Assembly: GCA_038496445.1 (NCBI GenBank) | Contig: JALMLS010000480.1 | Coordinates: 186,001-250,000, forward strand | Direction: 5' to 3' | Origin: Trichosphaerium sp. ATCC 40318 | Taxonomy: Eukaryota > Protista > Tubulinea | Length of the DNA: 64,000 bases | In this document: positions 5,716 through 56,584 of the stretch, one piece after another | Layout of the letters: each line of letters starts with the position of its first letter | How positions within the stretch are numbered: position 1 is the stretch's first letter | Notes under the pieces: generated by a model | Databases searched by the model: none | The model's input: the letters and a program-made list of their open reading frames with translations, nothing else | What the model was told of the DNA's origin: nothing | Translations under genes and position numbers: made by a program

Positions 5716-7703
5716 ATGCATTACATTGCATTATATTTATTTTTTGCTACGTTGGGAGTTTCTGGGTTAATTATACATGGTGCTCAAGACAGTAAGTCCA
5801 ACAAGCTATACACCACAGTTTACCTCCAAAATTTTGACGTTTTAAAGAGCACTTCGACAGTCCTAATATATCGTGGCTTTCAGGAGATTCGTGGAGCACT
5901 AATACAATAAATGGCACGTTATTTTTGAAAAACACGTGATCGGTTGCTTCATAGTTGTCTATGGGCGTCAGGCATCCATTACAAAGTTTCTTTGCCCTAA
6001 TGAAAAATATCCCAGTTTTAAACGAAATCCGACATAATCACGTGATACGAATACGACTTTTTTGACATTCTGCTTGTTTACTCTCATGCTATAGGCTTAC
6101 TTGTTGCCTTGACTCACCCGAATGTAACAAACAAAATTGTATTAATTAAAAACTCACTCGAAGATTGGAGCGCCACTGTAGGCGCAGCGCACCAGCTTGG
6201 AGCTAAAGCTGTTGTACTATACTCTACAGATATCAGTATGTACTGTATCTACATAGCAACAGTTAACTCTATTTTAGATGTCCCAGGCGCATTCAACTAC
6301 GTAAAGCTGAGTCGTATTGAGGCGCCGCAAAAGCTTCCTAGCATTCCAACAGTTGAAGTTGCTGGAGAAGAAATTGAAGATATTTATGACATGGTCTATA
6401 CACCAACTATTAATGGCACTTTTATTGAGTTTAATGTCACTCTCTTTAGCGATGGTACAGTCTTAGTTTATAACCAAGTGCCATGGTAATAATAGCGCTT
6501 AGAACCAAATCCATGGAGTGGTGTCTCAGTGTATGGAACTGTACGTTATTATTTTGTAATAAGCACACTTCTAAGCCTTTCTGATTAGATAGTTTTCTCA
6601 ATTGTTATTGGATCTCTATGTATTTGTGCAACGTTCCTGGCATGTCATAAGATATACATCATATACAAGTCACCTCAGGGGTTACAACTAACATCTCAGT
6701 TGGCATGTCTTTACATTGAAGTGTTTGCAAACACATTGAGGAGTATTTATGTTATCATTGATCCAATATACTCAAGACGTATCTTTCCAATGCCTTTCCA
6801 TTCATTCATGATCCTTGGACTTGTATCACTATCACTTGCAACAACAGTACTCATTGGGTTTTATTGGTACGTTATCAGTAGTTGAACCAAATTTATATTT
6901 GATCACGTGACCTTTGTTGCCATCTGTAAAGAAGAAAATGGAAACTGTTTTTTTTCTTTTAACTTCTCTTTAGGCATGAAATGCTTCTTAACGTCAAGAC
7001 TTTGAGAGAAAATCATAAATTCACTGTTGGCAAATTCTTTATACCAAGTGTAGTTATTGTTACCCTTCTTATACTGCTTGAAATAACAGTTGTCTTTCTT
7101 CTAATATTCTATGTATTTAATGCTGCTTACATTATTTTTGAAGCTATTGTTTTACTTCTATCTTTTGCCTCAGGTATATACTTACTTATCACTGGATACT
7201 TTGTACTCAAAAGGCTCAATAAAGTACAAGCGAAATCAAAAACACTGAAAACAATAAGACGTGTACGTCAACCCTGTTGGATCGAACTTGATACACATCT
7301 TTTTTCTCCAAACATTCATTTTTTAGTAAATCTATTGACCATTTTTCTGCTTTGTATAGACACATCCGGCCTTTTGTTGCTGTCTAGACTAAACACCATT
7401 GACACTAATTTATTGATATAAATCTTGACTAACAAAATTGTTTAGATAACCATACAAATCATGTCGAGTGCAATCTTCATATTTATCTATTCACTCAACT
7501 TCATTTTTTTTGTTTTCAAAACATACTCATCTCCTTGGCCGTTTCTAGCTACAACGTTTATGTATTGGGTTCCTTTATTACTTGTTAGTATCATACAAAT
7601 ATCAGCTATACAAAAGAAACCAAAGAAGCAAGATTCATCATCCGCAGTACAGACAATGACTCACATTCCAACTACCGCAATAACTACTTCACCGAACATT
7701 TAA
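5716..7703 (+). CDS. Signal peptide + PA (protease-associated)-like domain + ~7 transmembrane helices
   Basis: Hydrophobic leader MHYIALYLFFATLGVSG; PA-like motifs VTNKIVLI...AHQLGAKAVVLY...IPTVEV; then seven hydrophobic segments across exons at 6590-7610 and a Ser/Thr-rich tail. Confidence 0.75.
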
Positions 7704-8134: not shown

Positions 8135-9327
8135 TTATTGCTTGGATCGGAGGTTATTTTTGAGTATGTTAGCACCATAACGATTGTTCTGTTCAGGATG
8201 TAAACGTTCAAGCCTTTCACCACAATACTTTCCAAGAGTACAACACGTGAACGTTTCGTTTTCTCCAACCAAAACAGTATGTTCTCCATCTAAAATATAG
8301 TTGTATAATCCATCAGATACACGAACAACTGAGTCATACAATTCATCTGGTCTGTACCTAACACGATTTTTCAGTCAACAGAAAAGAAAAAAATGAGAAA
8401 ATGATTTAAGGTTTTCTCTTTGTCCACCTAATGAATACACCTCTGTATTCAACGTGAAATAGACGCAATTATACATATCGCTTTCGTATGAGGTTACAAT
8501 TTTTTCATGAGCGTCTGAGGCATGAAAATCACTTTCTACAAAACTAAAATTTAGCATTCGTACCATTCGCCTTTGATGAGTATAGGGTGACCTCTAGTTA
8601 TCCAAAAGTCACCTAGTTTGACCATACGTTTCTTTACTTTCTCGCGAATGGCATCAACATATAAAACAGTTTGTACTGTTCCTGAAGATGATACAATTTT
8701 ATCACCAACACAAATAACTTTTGCTTTCCTTTTCATTATTGTACCATCATCTGTTACTATTTTTAGCATAAATTTTCCATCAAAACACCCTGGATCATCG
8801 TAATAGTATACTATTGGTTGTACTCTAGTGTATAGCTTCCTTCCATTCTTCTCACAAACAACATTGGCATGGGGCATTTGACGCCACTGTCTGTCATAGC
8901 TAGGGTAGACAACAATACTGCAAATACCGTCCTTGGCCTCTGAGCAATTGTGACGACCCAATACGACACTGTTATCCACAATTCCGTAATCTCCTTGTAG
9001 ATAGCTACTACTATCTTTCTCGGGTACTTGGGCTCTTACTTCGACAGTATATGTACCAGCACCTTTGTTTAGAAGCTCTGATTCTATTGAAACGCGTATT
9101 GCAAGAGAACGAGATGCGTTTTGGGCGAAACTTAATCGTTTAGGAAGTGCCGGATAGAGGCTTTTTTCGGCTCTTACAAGCACGTTGAAGCGTAGTGAAA
9201 CTGTTTTAATGCTATCCAGCTGTTTGTAAGTGAGGTGAGAAAAGATTGATAGTAAACAGTCATCATTAACGTCCTGTAGCGTTGTAGACAGCGTTAAAGC
9301 TGATAAATTGGTGTCTAAATTATCCAT
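8135..9327 (-). CDS. F-box protein with a C-terminal Vint-type Hint (hedgehog/intein) domain
   Basis: F-box-like LQDVNDDCLLSIFSHLTYKQLDSIKTVSLRFNVLV. Hint block A YYDDPG/CFDG (Cys codon 8785-8787), VGDKI, block B WITRGHPI. One GT-AG intron 8358-8563 joins GEW|YRPDEL...LYNYILDGEHTVLV...CCTLGKYCG. Confidence 0.85.
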
Positions 9328-19141: not shown

Positions 19142-19798
19142 CTACTCTGTCTTGAGAGTAGAATAATGCGAGTAGAATGATACGCGAGTTATATCATATT
19201 TGAGTGTGTTGTTAATATAAAACTGGTGAAAGTCATTAACCCTCTTACCATTAATATAAAAGCACGTATCAAACAATTGTCTACCACCAAAACACTTATA
19301 AACACCATGTTTTTTCCCATTAACATAATTACATTCAATCTCTATTGATCCATCATCAAACCATCTCTTATACAACCCATCAAGTCTGCCATTTAAATAG
19401 TTACTCAATACATACATTTGTCCGTTCCTATGCCAAGTTCTACACTCGCCATGTCTTCCACCGTGTACCCAATTCTCTGAACGTAAAAGGATATTTTTAT
19501 TCCTCTGACCAGGAGGTATCGTTGAGCTTAAGAGTTTGTGGTTTGAACGAAGAGACCATGAGAAGTCAGAAGAAGACGAAGAATAAACAGTTTTGTTTCG
19601 TGTAGTTATTTTTAACCATTTTCTATGTTTGTTTAGATCGCAGTCGAACCTGGTAGCCATAGCGGCTTCTTTAGATAATAACGGCCATTTTAGATAAACT
19701 TCAGGATCTAGATCTGTTATATCAAGTTGTAGCTCTATCGGAAGGCTTGTAATCGCGTAATCTAACATCGTTGGTGGTTTTAAGCGTGTATTTGTCAT
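19142..19798 (-). CDS. F-box-like + MORN-variant (MORN_2) repeat protein
   Basis: Single ORF: ITSLPIELQLDI..., then repeats HGECRTWHRNGQ, LDGLYKRWFDDG, KHGVYKCF. Confidence 0.85.
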   Translation of the reverse strand: MTNTRLKPPTMLDYAITSLPIELQLDITDLDPEVYLKWPLLSKEAAMATRFDCDLNKHRKWLKITTRNKTVYSSSSSDFSWSLRSNHKLLSSTIPPGQRNKNILLRSENWVHGGRHGECRTWHRNGQMYVLSNYLNGRLDGLYKRWFDDGSIEIECNYVNGKKHGVYKCFGGRQLFDTCFYINGKRVNDFHQFYINNTLKYDITRVSFYSHYSTLKTE

Positions 19799-34407: not shown

Positions 34408-35963
34408 TTATGCAGGAAAGTTTTGCGGTTGGTAATCTTGTGCTGCATCTTGACGTGTCAGAACAGTATCAAAAAAATTAGGTGAATGATAGAATTCATG
34501 AGAAGGTAGAATATCTCTATTGAAAGCTTCCAAGTCACGTAAAAACCCAGTCTGTGTAACATTTCTAGCTTGGAAAATACCTTGCCTTGAGTCCCAAACA
34601 AATATACTTCTACCAGTATGATAAAGATCAATAAGCTCTGTATGCTGTACGCTAACTGCATGGTATCTATTCTCCTTCATATTGATCTTAATACCTATAC
34701 CTTGATACCCAACAGTGATGTAATTACGGCTTGTACTAAGCCCGTAAGGATACAGTTCAAGAGGAGCAGCAAAGAGAGTAGGTGTAACAATAGATATACC
34801 AACAAAGTTATCTATAAGAGTGTTATGAGTAACAACAGCTCTCACTGGACCGTTTAAAGATAAAGCTCCCTTTGGTAGACTTCCATCGTCAGTATCACGT
34901 TGACCATTGATATAATTGAATCTTATGTAGATGACATTTGCGTTTGCAACATAAACACCACATGACTTAGGATAATTGATAGTATTATGTTCAATTATGA
35001 CATCCGTAGGACGAATACCTCCTGTATGATAGGCTCCATCCTCATGTGTATCATCAATAACATAAGCGTTATGGTATACAAGAATACCATAGGCACCGCT
35101 ATCATTTGGTATCTCACTACTATACCCGGCACCAACAATGACATTGTTAGTTACAGTAAGATTTTTTACACCTACACAAGAAATAAATAAGAACCAATGC
35201 CTTCTTATATTGACTACGTACCACTCCAAGCGGCTAAAGCGCCCTTGATATACTGGGCTTGGAATCCGTTACCATCGATAACTATATCTTCGATAGTTCC
35301 ATTAGGAGAGGTCCGAGAACCAATCAAACCGATGCCAAATGCTGCTGAACCAATGTTGTCCGGATATTGAGCGTTCCCTGTCTTTGAATGGAACTGACAT
35401 CTTGTGATACTTAATTCACGTATCTTTAGCGTATCATGAAGATTTAATAATGATATCCAGTACGGTGCCATGAAGTTCTCAAAAGAGCAAGATGTTACTT
35501 TTATATTGACCATATCTTGACTTGGTACAGGAAATCCGTACGTCGCTACATTTGCACCGTCGTTATCGATAGTAAAGGAAATAGCGTTACCAACAGCGCC
35601 ACGTCCTTTAAAACCAATACTGGTAAAGAATACGTTGCCTGCAACGTTTCTTACGTGAAAAACGCTCGCAAAGCCCTGAGCGCCCGTTCCACCGATAATA
35701 AGCTGTGATATTGCAGCTCCGTCGCCATAAATATGTACTGGGCCGCGTATTACGAGACCTAGAGCGTTGTTTGCGTCGAAGTAGTATTGACCAGCAGGAA
35801 TGCGAAGATTGTTGTTTTGCGCTATAGCATCGTCTATTGCAGCTTGAAACGAGGCTGTATTGTCAGTAGAACCATCACCTAACGCTCCATAATCTAACAC
35901 GGAAAGTTGTGCTGAAATAGATACGCAGGTAATGCACAACAATATAATTAGTTGTGTTTGCAT
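34408..35963 (-). CDS. Secreted pectin-lyase-like right-handed beta-helix protein (Pectate_lyase_3-type N-terminus)
   Basis: Signal peptide; LSVLDYGALGDGSTDNTASFQAAID, IPAGQY, IYGDG; repeated 'V.I..N.I' coils; a single short intron (~35173-35222) joins the two long ORFs. Confidence 0.88.
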
Positions 35964-37519
35964 CACTAGAAGTGTTGTTTGCTTTTAGATTGAGCTATTT
36001 GAAATTGCTGGACTTGACAACTCTTACAGTAGTCTTTACGCAACTGTTAGGTGTAGTACTAGTCCGCTAACAATGCAATGTGAACGGCTTACAAAAAAGG
36101 AAACAATGGGCTTTTTCGGAAGAGAAATCCTGAAAAACAAACTTGTGTTAGATTTAGTGGTTGGTTTCCTACTATTGTATGAACTTATCTCTGAGCACAC
36201 TCAATAAAAGTCACCTGTTTCTGGTAGTTACGTATACACACCTCATAATCCTTACAGGAAATCTATTGTACAATTACACTACTTTGTTTTCTGATAATCC
36301 TGTCTTCATACATCAAGCTTGGTGTTCTTCGAGAAAAAAGTTTACCACGCAAACCTTCATTTGTATACGACTACTGAACTATCAAAGAAGTATCATGGGC
36401 TTTGCAAAGCTTATAAACCCATGTTCCTTATGGTCAGCCCCCTCCACAACCTCCCATAAATCCAACATTTCCTAAAAAACACGTGAGCCAAAAAAAACAA
36501 TTAATTAAGTTGAAACTGACCTAAGTCTCTTCTTCTTCTTGATGGTCCTGTTCTTGGAGTATATGTACGTCGTTGAGGTTCTTGTTTATCCCCAGAAGGC
36601 GTAGCGGTAGGGTTTATAAACGAATTGAAGCTTTGAGAGCGTAAATAGGCAGAAGTATCATGATAACACGTACAATAGCTGGAGGTGTTCGTAAAACGCC
36701 AAAATGATAGCGTATAAGTACGTCAACAATAAGTTAACGCTTTCTTTACTATTCCCATATTGTGTAGGTCCAGAGGTACCAATAGCTTTTACTTTACACT
36801 TTGAGCAACATAGAATGTTGTAAATCTCGTTTGGTGGAAGTATTTTGCCTTTATGTACTAGAACCATTATGTTAGTGTACTACAAACGTTTATAACGCGA
36901 ATAAAGGCGTTTTTGGTAATTTGTACTTGCGTAGCTTCAAGCGCCTAGTTGATACTCCAGTCGCTTTACAAATGCGCTTGTAAAGGTTCCAGGATGCTTC
37001 TTTTGGGTTGTATAATACCTACATTTACAATCAATACTAGAACGCTTTTTACAGTTATCATACATGATAGTTAGTACCCGAGTAACGAATGGTAATCTTT
37101 TCAGTCATAATACTGGTAGTGACTCAGCATGCCTGTAAAACACTTAACGATTCTTAAGCGGCAGAGATTTTCGACCTGGCACGTGGTGAAAACAATGCAA
37201 TGTGAGCTAAAAGTTTCCAGTAGCCACTGTACAAAGTTACGCAATGTATTTATGGAGTACTTTTTATCTCAAAGAAAACACGCGAAAACTAATCTTATGA
37301 ACAATTTTTGCTTTGCTTCATCAAGTATTTGAAATAGAGGGAGGGCTTAACAAGTTGTTTCAATAAACAATCACGTGGAATTTGTACCAGTAAATGTAAA
37401 TGTAAAAGATTGTTTCGTTGCTTTTTGACATTAGCACTGGAACATTTGCTACGCCTCCCTCATTCTTTCAAGACATTCCATGGAGTCCTTATTTCCTTGA
37501 GATAATGATTGTTTTATTT

Positions 37520-45102: not shown

Positions 45103-45693
45103 ATGGCATCAAAGCGCAAGGCACCAATTATTAAGATATTCCATTGCCATAATTACAACTAACACCACAAATAGCGAGGCACTGCAAAATCGGCTGCTTC
45201 TGGCTTGTTGAACCTTCCAGTAGAGTTACACCTCTATATTATCGATTTAAGCTATGAGGTGTATTTGCGGTGGCCTCTACTATCAAAATACGCAGCGACA
45301 ACAACAAGGTTTGATGATTGTCTGAATAAACACGGAAAATGGCTGAAACAAAAGAAGAACTCTTCATATTCACAACTTATAAAACAACAATATTGGATGC
45401 ATGGTAAACGACATGGAGAGTATAAGAGTTGGCACACGAATGATCAGTTATCAAAGCAATGTTGTTACATCAACGGTTTGAAAGAAGGAGAATACAAAAC
45501 GTGGTACTGTACTGGTAATGTGTTGCAAGAGTTTCATTTTGTCCATGATAATCTAAACGGAGACTACAAAGTGTGGCACGCCAATGGTCAATTGTATGTC
45601 CATTGCAATTATATCAACGGCATACTCAATGGACAGTACAAACAATGGAATTGTAACGGTGAAGTAAACACTGATTGTACATATGAATGGTGA
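45103..45693 (+). CDS. F-box-like + MORN-variant repeat protein, paralogue of 19142-19798
   Basis: MASKRK|RGTAKSAASGLLNLPVELHLYII via a GC-AG intron 45121-45174 with CTAAC branch site; shares EVYL(R/K)WPLLSK.AA..TRFD with the other copy; HGEYKSWHTNDQL-type repeats. Confidence 0.85.
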
Positions 45694-53346: not shown

Positions 53347-54477
53347 TCACTTCTCTATTTTAATCACTCCTGGAAGTAATTGTAATACATCACAAGTAGC
53401 ACTTGAATCTTCAATGTTGATGAATTTTACACCAACAAGTGCTGCAACACCAGCATTTGTCACCAAACAACAATTAGATAAATCAATCTTATAGACACCA
53501 GCCAATGCCTTTACACCATCGTCAGTTACTTTTGTACAGCAAAGGATAATAGAATGAACACCGGCCAATGCTGTCAATCCTTCATCTGTAACATGTGTGA
53601 ACCCAAGATCAATTGTATGAACTCCAGCTAAGGATTTAATACCATCATCTGTTATAAGCCTACATTGGCAAAGACTAATTGTATGAACGCCAGACAATGC
53701 TTTAAGCCCTTTATCCCCTACTTTTGTATTGGAAAGATGGATTGTATGAACACCAGATAAAGCTCTAACACCTTCACATGAAACGAAAGTATAGTTAAGA
53801 TTAATTGAATGAACACCACTTAGTGCCTTGATTCCGTCATTTGATACTATTGTATCAAATAGATTGATTGTATGAACTCCTGCAAGAGCTTGTACACCTT
53901 CATCACTAACATCAGTAGAACTTAAGTTGATTGTATGAACTCCTGCGAGAGCTTTGACACCTTCATCACTTATTGCACAGGAACTTAAATTGATCGAATG
54001 AACCCCAGCCAGTGTTTTAATGCCTTCATCTGTAACACATGTGTCAGATAAATTGATGTTTTTGATTCCAGAAAGTTGTTTTAGATGAACATCATTAATG
54101 AAGAGACAAGATCTAAAGTCAATACTATCAACAACTTTAAAGTCAGTAAAATCAGCTTTTATCTTCCTCTTAGTATAAACCCTCAAACCGTACACCCCTT
54201 GTAGGTACTTTAAGTGCTTTTGTTTAATGTTAAATAGAATATGAATCGTGTTTGTTGTTATAAGATGCGGTGCGCTTTTGAATAGCTTTTTGAGCTTTTC
54301 TTTGTTTTTAATCACTATCACCCTTCTGTTCACATATCCCACGTGTTGTATTGCGATTGTTTTTAATAATTTAGATGTTCGTACTACTGAATGCATAGAT
54401 TTATCAGGAATTAACTGTATAATGCAAACAATGACTTCAACAGGAATCTCAGCAAAGAATGCGCTGTTTTTGTTCAT
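53347..54477 (-). CDS. F-box + short (21-22 aa) leucine-rich repeat protein
   Basis: FAEIPVEVIVCIIQLI...VVRTSK; about 10 repeats of GVHTINLSxTxVSDEGVKALA; body uninterrupted by introns. Confidence 0.9.
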   Translation of the reverse strand: MNKNSAFFAEIPVEVIVCIIQLIPDKSMHSVVRTSKLLKTIAIQHVGYVNRRVIVIKNKEKLKKLFKSAPHLITTNTIHILFNIKQKHLKYLQGVYGLRVYTKRKIKADFTDFKVVDSIDFRSCLFINDVHLKQLSGIKNINLSDTCVTDEGIKTLAGVHSINLSSCAISDEGVKALAGVHTINLSSTDVSDEGVQALAGVHTINLFDTIVSNDGIKALSGVHSINLNYTFVSCEGVRALSGVHTIHLSNTKVGDKGLKALSGVHTISLCQCRLITDDGIKSLAGVHTIDLGFTHVTDEGLTALAGVHSIILCCTKVTDDGVKALAGVYKIDLSNCCLVTNAGVAALVGVKFINIEDSSATCDVLQLLPGVIKIEK

Positions 54478-55600
54478 TCTTGGTTTATAAATACACCACA
54501 GTAACCCAAACACTATGTGTTACTCTCTTTGCGATAAGGGAAATCCATTATTAAGCCAACATGCCAGTTAAGGGCGTTTACAAACATCGGAACTCAATCA
54601 AGAAATTGTTGCCACGAAACCGAAAAAACTTACAAAACATCTTGAAACCATTAAACACATCAAATACACGCCTTGTACAACAACTTGAACACGCAGAATT
54701 TTAACGCTATTTAATTACGTTTTTTACATCTTTCATGAGCCCTATCACTGCCTACACTCACCCAATTTATGAACTATGATTGACACTCACTATGACGTTC
54801 CAGAAAAAGATTACATGTGGATATGGCTGACCAAGCGTTGTTTCCAAGCTGCCTGCTTTTGGGAACTGCTGGAGATAGTCGAATCCTTCATTTCAAGCCA
54901 GCTGACCATCAAACGGCGAAGATATCATTAGACCTAACATAAACAAACTGGGTTGTTTTTGTTTGTACCGCACATTTATGTGAGCAATTGGTAGTTAAGC
55001 ACAAGGTCATGCTGCACGTCAAAAGAATATGTGGGTGAACTTCATACTCACAAGATTGTCCAAACAGGAAGTTTTGGTGCATTGCACTGTTTTTATGTTT
55101 ATGGTCTTTTACACAAAGAGTGGATTCGTTGTGTCTTGATATACTTAAACCATATTTACGTCAATGGTAAGAGAAGTCATCTAAGAATTAAGGATGTGAC
55201 AAATGACCTGATTATCAATAACAAAATTAACAATCCCAGTTTTTAGGTCATTACTTATAACCTAAACCTTTTTCATTTCTGATAGTTTGTATAATGGTTG
55301 CTATAATATAATTAAACCTTATACTGTTGTTAACATGAACTACATACTCACAGTGACGAACAAATCCGAGTTCAAAAAATGGACTATCACTGACTGTGGT
55401 TTTTTTGATATATCCTTCTGTACATGCTTCTGTTTTTTAGTCGAGCTAGCCACTGGTTACAGCCACTACATACAGACACCTGCAAGCTTTTTGATAAAAT
55501 ATATATTTCAAGACAAGTCAAATGGTTTCTCTGGGTCATAATCGTTAAGTGATTAAACGCTTGTACTTGTACAAATATTTCATGTCAAGTCATCGTATCC

Positions 55601-56584
55601 ATGGACGACACAAAAAGAAGCAAAAAACGTCAAAAACCTTTGAAGAACACCACCTACACCTTGCATAACACGTAAATATCTTATTGATTGCATAACGTTC
55701 TAAAATATTACTTCTAGCGCTCAAATAACATTATTGGGCATGCCTATTGAGATTCTAGCGTTTATATTAACGAATACAACAACAGCTCGATTTGCAGCTT
55801 GTCAAACATGTCGTATCCTTTCTTCTATCATTCACGACATTGTTGGGTATGACTGTATACGTATAAGAACAGGAGAACAAGTAAAAGAAGTCATAAAACA
55901 CAGAGGAATCATTAAACACACAGCAATCAGGTTTAGGACTGATGCAGCTACCGGGTTTCCGTCTGACAAGATTGTGAACAAATTTGCAGGAGTTCATGAC
56001 ATTGCCTTTCCCATACCTATGTGACAGATGAAGGTATCAAAGCTCTTGCAGGTGTTCACACAATCTACCTAAATAATACTCCAGTAACAGATGAAGGTGT
56101 CAAAGCTCTTGCAGGTGTACACGCTATTAACCTTGAACTCACCAAAGTGACTGATGAAGCAATCCAAAGCCTTGTTGGTGTACACACAATTAACATAAAT
56201 TGTTGTCATAGCATTACGGTTGAAGGAATCAAAGCACTCAAAGATGCTCACGATGTTTCTGTTTCTCATGTTAAAAACTCATGGCTAGAACATCTTAGCA
56301 AAGTTCATACGTTACACTTAGTATGTGGGGCAACAGATGATCAACTCAAAGAGTTGACTAATGTCAAACACCTTGAGCTTAGTTGTTGCTATGATGTAAC
56401 AAACTTGGGTTTGAAAACATTGGTCAACCTTGAAAAACTACATGTGTTGGGTAACAACAATATTACAAATGATTGCTTGAAGCACTTAAAATCTCTAAAA
56501 CATTTATGTGAACATAATACAAATATTACAAGGGAGGATGTTGAGTCAATGGGTATTCAATATACGAACTATGTAGATGACTGA
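55601..56584 (+). pseudogene. F-box + LRR paralogue with an apparent 1-nt frameshift
   Basis: First exon MDDTKRSKKRQK..., intron 55672-55717, LLGMPIEILAFI; the frame changes at ~56004-56012 inside the first GVHxIxLSxTxVTDEG repeat. Confidence 0.7.

Follow-up and report, generated by a model that had tools for sequence, protein, structure and literature searches.

The stretch of DNA considered here, called the window, comprises 64,000 nucleotides of Trichosphaerium sp. ATCC 40318 (GenBank assembly GCA_038496445.1, contig JALMLS010000480.1, positions 186,001-250,000 of the forward strand), and all coordinates given below are those of the window. On its minus strand, at 8135-9327, lies a two-exon gene for a predicted 328-amino-acid protein in which an F-box is followed by a middle region and by a C-terminal Hint domain of the Vint type. 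The features identified in this gene are the following, with a slash marking the exon junction or the predicted cleavage site:

8564-9327, minus strand: exon 1, from the ATG at 9327 (Met1) to the first two bases of the Trp255 codon; homologues read GEW/YRPDEL here
8358-8563, minus strand: intron, 206 nt, phase 2, GTACGA...TGTTAG, with GT at 8563-8562 and AG at 8359-8358
8135-8357, minus strand (coding 8357-8138): exon 2, the last base of Trp255, then Tyr256-Gln328 and the TAA stop at 8137-8135
9154-9273, minus strand: F-box, about residues 19-58, from Pfam scores near the cut-off, fold matches and the family profile
8803-9150, minus strand: middle region, about residues 60-175, beta-rich in an AlphaFold2 (AF2) model
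8785-8790, minus strand: predicted scissile bond Gly180/Cys181, in a G/CF motif as in hedgehog
8564-8787, minus strand: N-terminal half of the Hint domain, Cys181-Trp255, with blocks A and B, from positions 1-70 of Pfam Vint and from models
8587-8598, minus strand: block B, Thr244-Arg-Gly-His247 (TxxH), from the sequence and the family alignment
8231-8308, minus strand: block F/G-like segment LYNYILDGEHTVLVGENETFTCCTLG, residues 272-297, which aligns with IYQFVLKTGHTMNIGG-YECICLG of the Tetrahymena Vint chain 8r2c
8138-8230, minus strand: Vint-specific C-terminal tail KYCGERLERLHPEQN..., residues 298-328, predicted to be helical in relatives

Left unspliced, the reading frame opened by the ATG at 9327 meets a stop just beyond 8564, after GEWYEC; removal of the intron joins TG/G as Trp255, restores the frame and gives the 328-residue product. 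Exon 1 is matched by the product of an Amoeba proteus Trinity transcript, P0014, up to about residue 617-619 of the latter (phmmer), and exon 2 matches its residues 618-686 with 54% identity, collinear with the match of exon 1. A hidden Markov model (HMM) of the family, made from 13 relatives with the window protein left out, scores 179 bits against the spliced protein over residues 180-322, ungapped and with no frameshift, the junction reading GEW/YRPDEL. The splice has been accepted because of this collinear, ungapped agreement with the P0014 transcript and the family HMM, and this homology strongly supports a gene of two exons and one 206-nt GT..AG intron. The position of the intron is not family-wide, since in the genomic relatives found on Logan contigs L002 and L005 the introns of the Hint domain sit elsewhere (in L002 shortly behind Cys1, in L005 behind FIKIG). 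Neither a hydrophobic N-terminus nor a transmembrane segment is present in the protein, which has a maximum 19-residue hydropathy of 1.09 and is predicted to be a soluble, cytosolic precursor. A word-index protein search with exon 1 gave zero matches. One could suppose that the gene is a silent or decaying paralogue, a recent duplicate with no function of its own, as might fit the absence of the exact exon-1 product from a 15-billion-protein collection and a middle region for which no relatives could be detected; but neither exon is interrupted, the splice sites are canonical, all of the family-invariant residues have been kept and the 179-bit match to the family HMM runs without gaps or frameshifts, so that this explanation is very improbable.

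The boundary sequence YYYDDPG/CF puts Cys1 at residue 181, and the predicted Hint domain thus spans residues 181-328. Beyond block B, a block-F-like segment, LYNYILDGEHTV, is found at residues 272-283 and CCTLG at 293-297, so that the domain runs, in order, through block-F-like LYNYILDGEHTVLVG, then FTCCTLG at the position of the intein His-Asn, then a 31-residue tail and the end of the protein. Cys-Cys here occupies the block G site where inteins carry His-Asn, and there is no C-extein in the protein. Compared with Pfam Vint (PF14623), exon 1 alone matches positions 1-70 with 23.8 bits (E 4.4e-5; cut-off 27 bits), the score falling below the cut-off because the intron leaves only those profile positions. 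Full-length relatives, which are 40-58% identical, score 42.7-57.1 bits against the same cut-off, their matches ending at profile positions 102-122 of 166, with a short conserved helical tail present. Exon 1 matches residues 22-78 of 8r2c and exon 2 residues 81-129, in collinear order, and the tail shares an ER(L/V)..HP motif with that chain. The match to Pfam Hint (PF01079) is sub-threshold only, and neither the window protein nor any of the relatives gave a Pfam match to a VWA or Vwaint domain. Cys1, TRGH, the block-F-like segment and the CCTLG ending without the intein His-Asn are thus all present as a preliminary description of this DNA had claimed, at the coordinates listed above on the minus strand, as is a Vint domain without its usual VWA partner; the C-terminus is a Vint-type Hint domain with its catalytic Cys1 and TxxH intact.

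Structural models point the same way. Residues 178-258 of the exon-1 model, the N-terminal half of the Hint domain, align with inteins and 8r2c at Z 5.8-6.9, and in the models Cys181 superposes on Cys1 of 8r2c, of inteins and of hedgehog 1at0. The model of the relative P0011, in which the Hint part has a predicted local distance difference test score (pLDDT) > 90, has 8R2C as its best match (Foldseek E 8.6e-8); VIA-align places its residues 183-328 on 8R2C with Z 16.2 over 137 residues at 28% identity, covering residues -1 to 140 of the 169 and leaving the last ~29 residues of 8r2c unaligned. The same model matches inteins at Z 11-13.6, BIL2 (6TMM, 6Y75) at Z 12.8-13.6 and hedgehog 1AT0 at Z 13.1 over 107 residues, all confined to residues 185-297. 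Since 8r2c aligns through residue 328 of P0011 and the inteins and Hog stop at about 297, the C-terminal helices would appear to be a Vint-specific extension. The family profile finds 8r2c with E 8e-21; ESM Atlas feature searches gave no usable match. A Hint fold is therefore predicted, with its N-terminal half seen in the model of the window protein and the entire domain in that of its close relative P0011.

The N-terminus is an F-box by both profile and fold. In isolation it scores 20.0 bits against Pfam F-box (gathering cut-off 20.5) and 21.4 bits against F-box-like (cut-off 24.3). The AF2 model of exon 1 has a pLDDT of 81-90 in this region, and its residues 8-66 align at Z 5.1-5.7 with seven F-box chains bound to Skp1 (5ibk, AnkB 5k35, FBXO42, FBXL17, FBXL2, FBH1 and FBXL5). 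A profile of nine family N-termini retrieved almost solely F-box proteins from the PDB, among them Cdc4 (E 8e-5) and FBXL5 (E 1.4e-4) as well as FBXO3, KDM2A/B, FBXW8 and FBXO44; six of the nine match Pfam F-box themselves, the best with E 2.9e-6. Near-cut-off Pfam scores, Skp1-bound fold matches and the family profile thus bear out the F-box first suggested from the sequence, and the profile and structure searches proposed at that time have recovered both domains, the Vint domain by the 179-bit family HMM match and the 8r2c matches.

A middle domain between the F-box and the Hint domain, likewise proposed earlier, is present at about residues 60-175. Its AF2 model (pLDDT 45-73, about 7 strands) resembles macroglobulin (MG), Fn3 and Ig sandwiches at Z about 5.0-5.6, and it is probably an Ig/Fn3-like sandwich, as a low-confidence prediction from the model. 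No sequence relatives of this region were detectable, an exhaustive phmmer search giving one weak match to a repetitive FctA-type adhesin. The idea that it is a divergent copy of the Fn3-like domain of the relatives was rejected at the sequence level (hhalign probability 0.2%).

A phmmer search with exon 1 among 1.84 billion protein representatives gave 21 matches, nearly all of them through the Hint half, and the significant ones all map to the N-terminal half of that domain (8564-8787). In total about 30 relatives have been collected, their sources being environmental JGI contigs (of mRNA-like size), Logan assemblies and the EukProt transcriptomes of Amoeba proteus and Pyxidicula operculata; the range of named taxa is thus two genera of Tubulinea, most of the relatives being environmental. 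A metagenome scan for the family gave 3 loci, and a search for longer proteins with this Vint subtype returned the query's own cluster alone. At least 10 distinct pairings of an F-box with this subtype are found. The F-box scores above the Pfam cut-off in P0006, P0011 and P0022 and is recognisable in P0007, P0021, P0030 and P0031; it also lies upstream of Vint in L001 (before the called start), L003/4, L006 and L007, in the last two in another frame (an intron or a frameshift). What stands between the two constant parts varies: the middle domain is Fn3 in P0011 (Z 9.9) and helical and GRDP-like in P0006, P0030, P0014 and L005, and P0022 carries an added LIM domain. The F-box-Vint architecture is accordingly not unique to the window, occurring in other amoebae that represent at least two other amoebozoan lineages. 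In a tree of the family, a clade with the ending CSSLGGYCPR...DPYTD is well supported (100/100), and the window protein falls in the unresolved remainder, its nearest relative being 53% identical.

Within the Vint domain of the family, Cys1, I-T-x-G-H-P, W-x-RPDE, N-F, a His and V-G are near-invariant; in block B the G, H and P are invariant and the T nearly so (T/S-x-x-H). Essentially every relative in which the boundary is intact retains Cys1 and T/S-x-x-H. The tail motif KYCGxRLxxLxPxxN is conserved within the window's subfamily. Other positions are free to change: the residue before Cys1 may be G, A, S, C, P, F or Y, and the block G pair CC, CA, CS, VS or VC.

Two further observations were made among the relatives. 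In P0014/P0026, which are Trinity isoforms from Amoeba proteus, the F-box-like, GRDP-like and Vint parts are preceded on the N-terminal side by a Bud23-like methyltransferase domain, which could reflect a true fusion, a read-through or a chimeric transcript. An ESM Atlas fold search with the P0011 model returned clusters with Vint domains which, among the matches listed, are mostly from Nucleocytoviricota; one viral cluster (541 aa) aligns with P0011 residues 12-322 and may be a multi-domain look-alike in giant viruses. A scan of IMG/VR with the family motif found none, and a giant-virus origin of this Vint subtype is not supported, though most of the Atlas Vint clusters are viral.

As to what such a protein might do, a shift of the acyl group from nitrogen to sulfur (N-to-S) at Gly180-Cys181 would be the sole Hint reaction available to it, because Cys1 and TxxH are present and a terminal Asn and C-extein are absent. 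Intein-type splicing is ruled out by these same two absences, and a secreted, hedgehog-like role by the absence of a signal peptide and of a sterol-recognition region. The most likely role, by analogy with other Hint proteins and with a probability of roughly 0.55, would be an intracellular self-cleavage that releases the F-box adaptor from the Vint domain, a regulated maturation or switching of an adaptor of the Skp1-Cullin-F-box (SCF) ubiquitin ligase. Cys181, with the help of Thr244 and His247, would attack the carbonyl of Gly180, and the resulting thioester would then be resolved by water, a thiol or a small nucleophile, splitting the protein irreversibly into an adaptor of F-box and beta-sandwich (residues 1-180) and a free Vint fragment (181-328). 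The variable middle domain would be the substrate- or partner-binding part of the adaptor and Vint a constant, removable regulatory module whose cleavage matures or switches it; the conserved Vint-specific tail may allow a ligand to gate cleavage. A 2024 paper on 8R2C reportedly proposed that a ligand regulates cleavage and that the domain has an adduct-recognition region, which serves here as a lead only.

This maturation or switching role is favoured because the F-box and Vint are constant in the family while the variable part sits at the position of an F-box protein's substrate receptor, and because Vint recurs beside ubiquitin-ligase modules. Burglin 2008, in describing VWA-Vint, argued that the processing of Vint proteins probably takes place within the cell; four Vint proteins carry a U-box (U-box-VWA-Vint), and plant RING-VWA-Vwaint proteins are related (PMC2362128).

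Several points weigh against self-cleavage of an F-box adaptor. On the side of the Hint domain, the intein block-F Asp is Asn in the window protein, the family alignment shows no evident conserved equivalent of hedgehog Asp46 and has no Asp conserved between blocks A and B, and the fold evidence for the C-terminal half comes by way of relatives that are 40-53% identical. One relative, L006 (JGI contig Ga0247657_10004692, 82-1161), has a Tyr at the Cys1 position (FKG/YFDG), from which it follows that not every family member need cleave; L006 could be a pseudogene or a member that is inactive, or the Tyr could be a sequencing error. The F-box piece of L006 sits at the start of the contig, in a separate reading frame. 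On the side of the F-box, the scores of the window protein lie just under both Pfam cut-offs, and the canonical Leu-Pro is replaced by Val-Asn, as it also is in P0011. No published cleavage assay for any Vint domain was found in the searchable literature.

The Tyr of L006, the Asp-to-Asn change in block F and the lack of any Vint cleavage documented in that literature can also be read in favour of a Vint domain that never cleaves, a binding or structural domain serving as the substrate receptor of a conventional F-box protein, with the catalytic-looking residues there for the fold or for binding a ligand; in ordinary F-box proteins it is indeed the C-terminal domain that is the substrate receptor. 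As the main conservative rival this must be weighed, but it fits poorly, to judge from the alignment, with the retention of Cys1 and of the block B Thr and His in some 20 divergent sequences whose domains are 35-54% identical, which is hard to explain without catalysis, and it is the middle domain, not Vint, that looks like the diversifying receptor part. A non-cleaving role is therefore considered unlikely.

The preliminary description had put forward a covalent degron, in which an amine or hydroxyl of a target protein or lipid resolves the Cys1 thioester, so that the adaptor becomes covalently attached with no activating or conjugating enzyme (E1/E2) and brings SCF to that target or membrane. 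The precedents which it cited do hold, both for VWA-Vint (PMC2362128) and for the ATP-independent conjugation of a ubiquitin-like domain to substrates by BIL2 (PMC8616854): Hint thioesters serve ligation in hedgehog, to cholesterol, and in Tetrahymena BIL2. The copy in the window also has a hedgehog-like G/CF site, and the conserved Vint-specific tail beyond the Hint core could recognise an adduct. Against this stand the variability of the residue before Cys1, the lack of an apparent conserved general base like hedgehog Asp46, the shortness of the tail (about 30 aa, with the Pfam Vint match covering only positions 1-115 of 166) and the reliance of BIL2 on a terminal Asn that the window protein does not have; and nothing in the data favours ligation to a target over plain cleavage. 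The likeness to activated ubiquitin that was drawn from a C-terminal Gly-thioester fares no better, as it is specific to the copy in the window, the Gly not being a feature of the family, and mimicry of the ubiquitin C-terminus cannot be a conserved design point because the residue in question varies. The covalent degron is thus not the best reading and has to be regarded as quite unlikely. Its fullest form, with a ligand-gated Vint thioester as a built-in acyl donor that would plant the SCF adaptor, or an adduct-bearing C-terminus, on a target or membrane without E1/E2 as a self-installing degron or anchor, and with the middle domains (Fn3, GRDP-like, LIM, and the sandwich of the window protein) choosing the target, is slightly less likely again.

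Among known systems, the closest likeness is to the VWA-Vwaint-Vint proteins (PF14623, PMC2362128; 8R2C, a crystal structure of the Vint domain of Tetrahymena thermophila), with which the window protein shares Cys1, block B TxxH, the block-F-like segment, C-x-C/T-LG in place of His-Asn, the ER(L/V)..HP tail motif, and the lack of a signal peptide, with presumably intracellular processing; some VWA-Vint members bear an N-terminal U-box, which is itself a ubiquitin-ligase module. The window family differs from them in having an F-box and a variable middle domain instead of VWA and Vwaint, in a shorter C-terminal extension (the Pfam Vint profile goes unmatched past about position 115 of its 166) and in a family-specific W-x-RPDE motif after block B. 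Hedgehog/Hog (1AT0) likewise has the Hint fold, Cys1 and TxxH, with G/CF matched in the window copy, and releases its N-terminal cargo through a thioester without splicing, as the window protein would do; unlike hedgehog, the latter is not secreted, has no sterol-recognition region and no conserved Asp46, and its cargo would be an F-box adaptor, not a signalling ligand. In Tetrahymena BIL2/BUBL (PMC8616854) a Hint domain makes the upstream cargo an intracellular acyl donor, with a conceptual link to the ubiquitin system; there, however, one finds a terminal Asn, flanking ubiquitin-like domains and an isopeptide product, whereas the window protein has no Asn, no C-extein and a cargo that is not ubiquitin-like. 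The Hint fold and blocks A, B and F are recognisable as in inteins, but without the block G His-Asn, a +1 nucleophile or a C-extein the terminal domain would be capable of N-terminal cleavage alone. Canonical F-box proteins (Cdc4, FBXL5, FBXO3) also have an N-terminal three-helix F-box and then an interaction domain, here Fn3 or an Ig-like sandwich; what sets the window protein apart from them is the Hint domain, predicted to be self-processing, after the interaction domain. No F-box protein with an autoproteolytic module was found in the literature searched.

Elsewhere in the window, the plus strand carries two hydrophobic ORFs, of 146 aa and 80 aa, at 6981-7703, opposite to the F-box-Vint gene and just beyond its 3' end; neither has a significant match in Pfam, and they may be parts of one gene for a small multi-pass membrane protein. 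Leucine-rich repeats of the RNI type are encoded by long ORFs at 53347-54513 (minus strand) and 56021-56584 (plus strand; Pfam LRR_6, E 2.6e-24 and 2e-6, respectively), and ORFs with MORN_2 repeats at 19142-19798 (minus strand) and 45205-45693 (plus strand; E 1.5e-9 and 1.1e-11). At 34408-35966 on the minus strand, adjoining ORFs match pectate-lyase-like right-handed beta-helix families (PF12708, E 1.2e-8; PF13229, E 6.7e-5) and probably belong to a single gene as its exons.

The cargo that Hint domains release or ligate is known to include secreted signals (hedgehog), exteins (inteins) and toxins (pretoxin-HINT) as well as ubiquitin-like domains (BIL), and Vint is the least understood of their eukaryotic branches. 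The combination described here would add an N-terminal F-box partner to a known, Vint/Hint type of autoprocessing. Full-text literature searches found no description of an F-box-Vint or F-box-Hint fusion, the papers that contain both terms being unrelated or treating the domains separately, and the sole description of the Vint family in general that was found is that of Burglin 2008 (PMC2362128); the suggestion that the architecture is undescribed thus stands as far as papers go, though its recurrence in other amoebae means that it is not unique to this gene. Together with the older observation of U-box-VWA-Vint proteins, the F-box-Vint family suggests a recurring functional link of Vint autoprocessing with ubiquitin ligases, for which the window protein, small (37 kDa), soluble and easily expressed, offers a test case. 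If cleavage is gated by a ligand, or passes the adaptor to a nucleophile, it would provide a new means of regulating or directing an SCF ligase and possibly a tool for induced degradation; if there is plain self-cleavage, this would still be the first proposed zymogen-like F-box protein.

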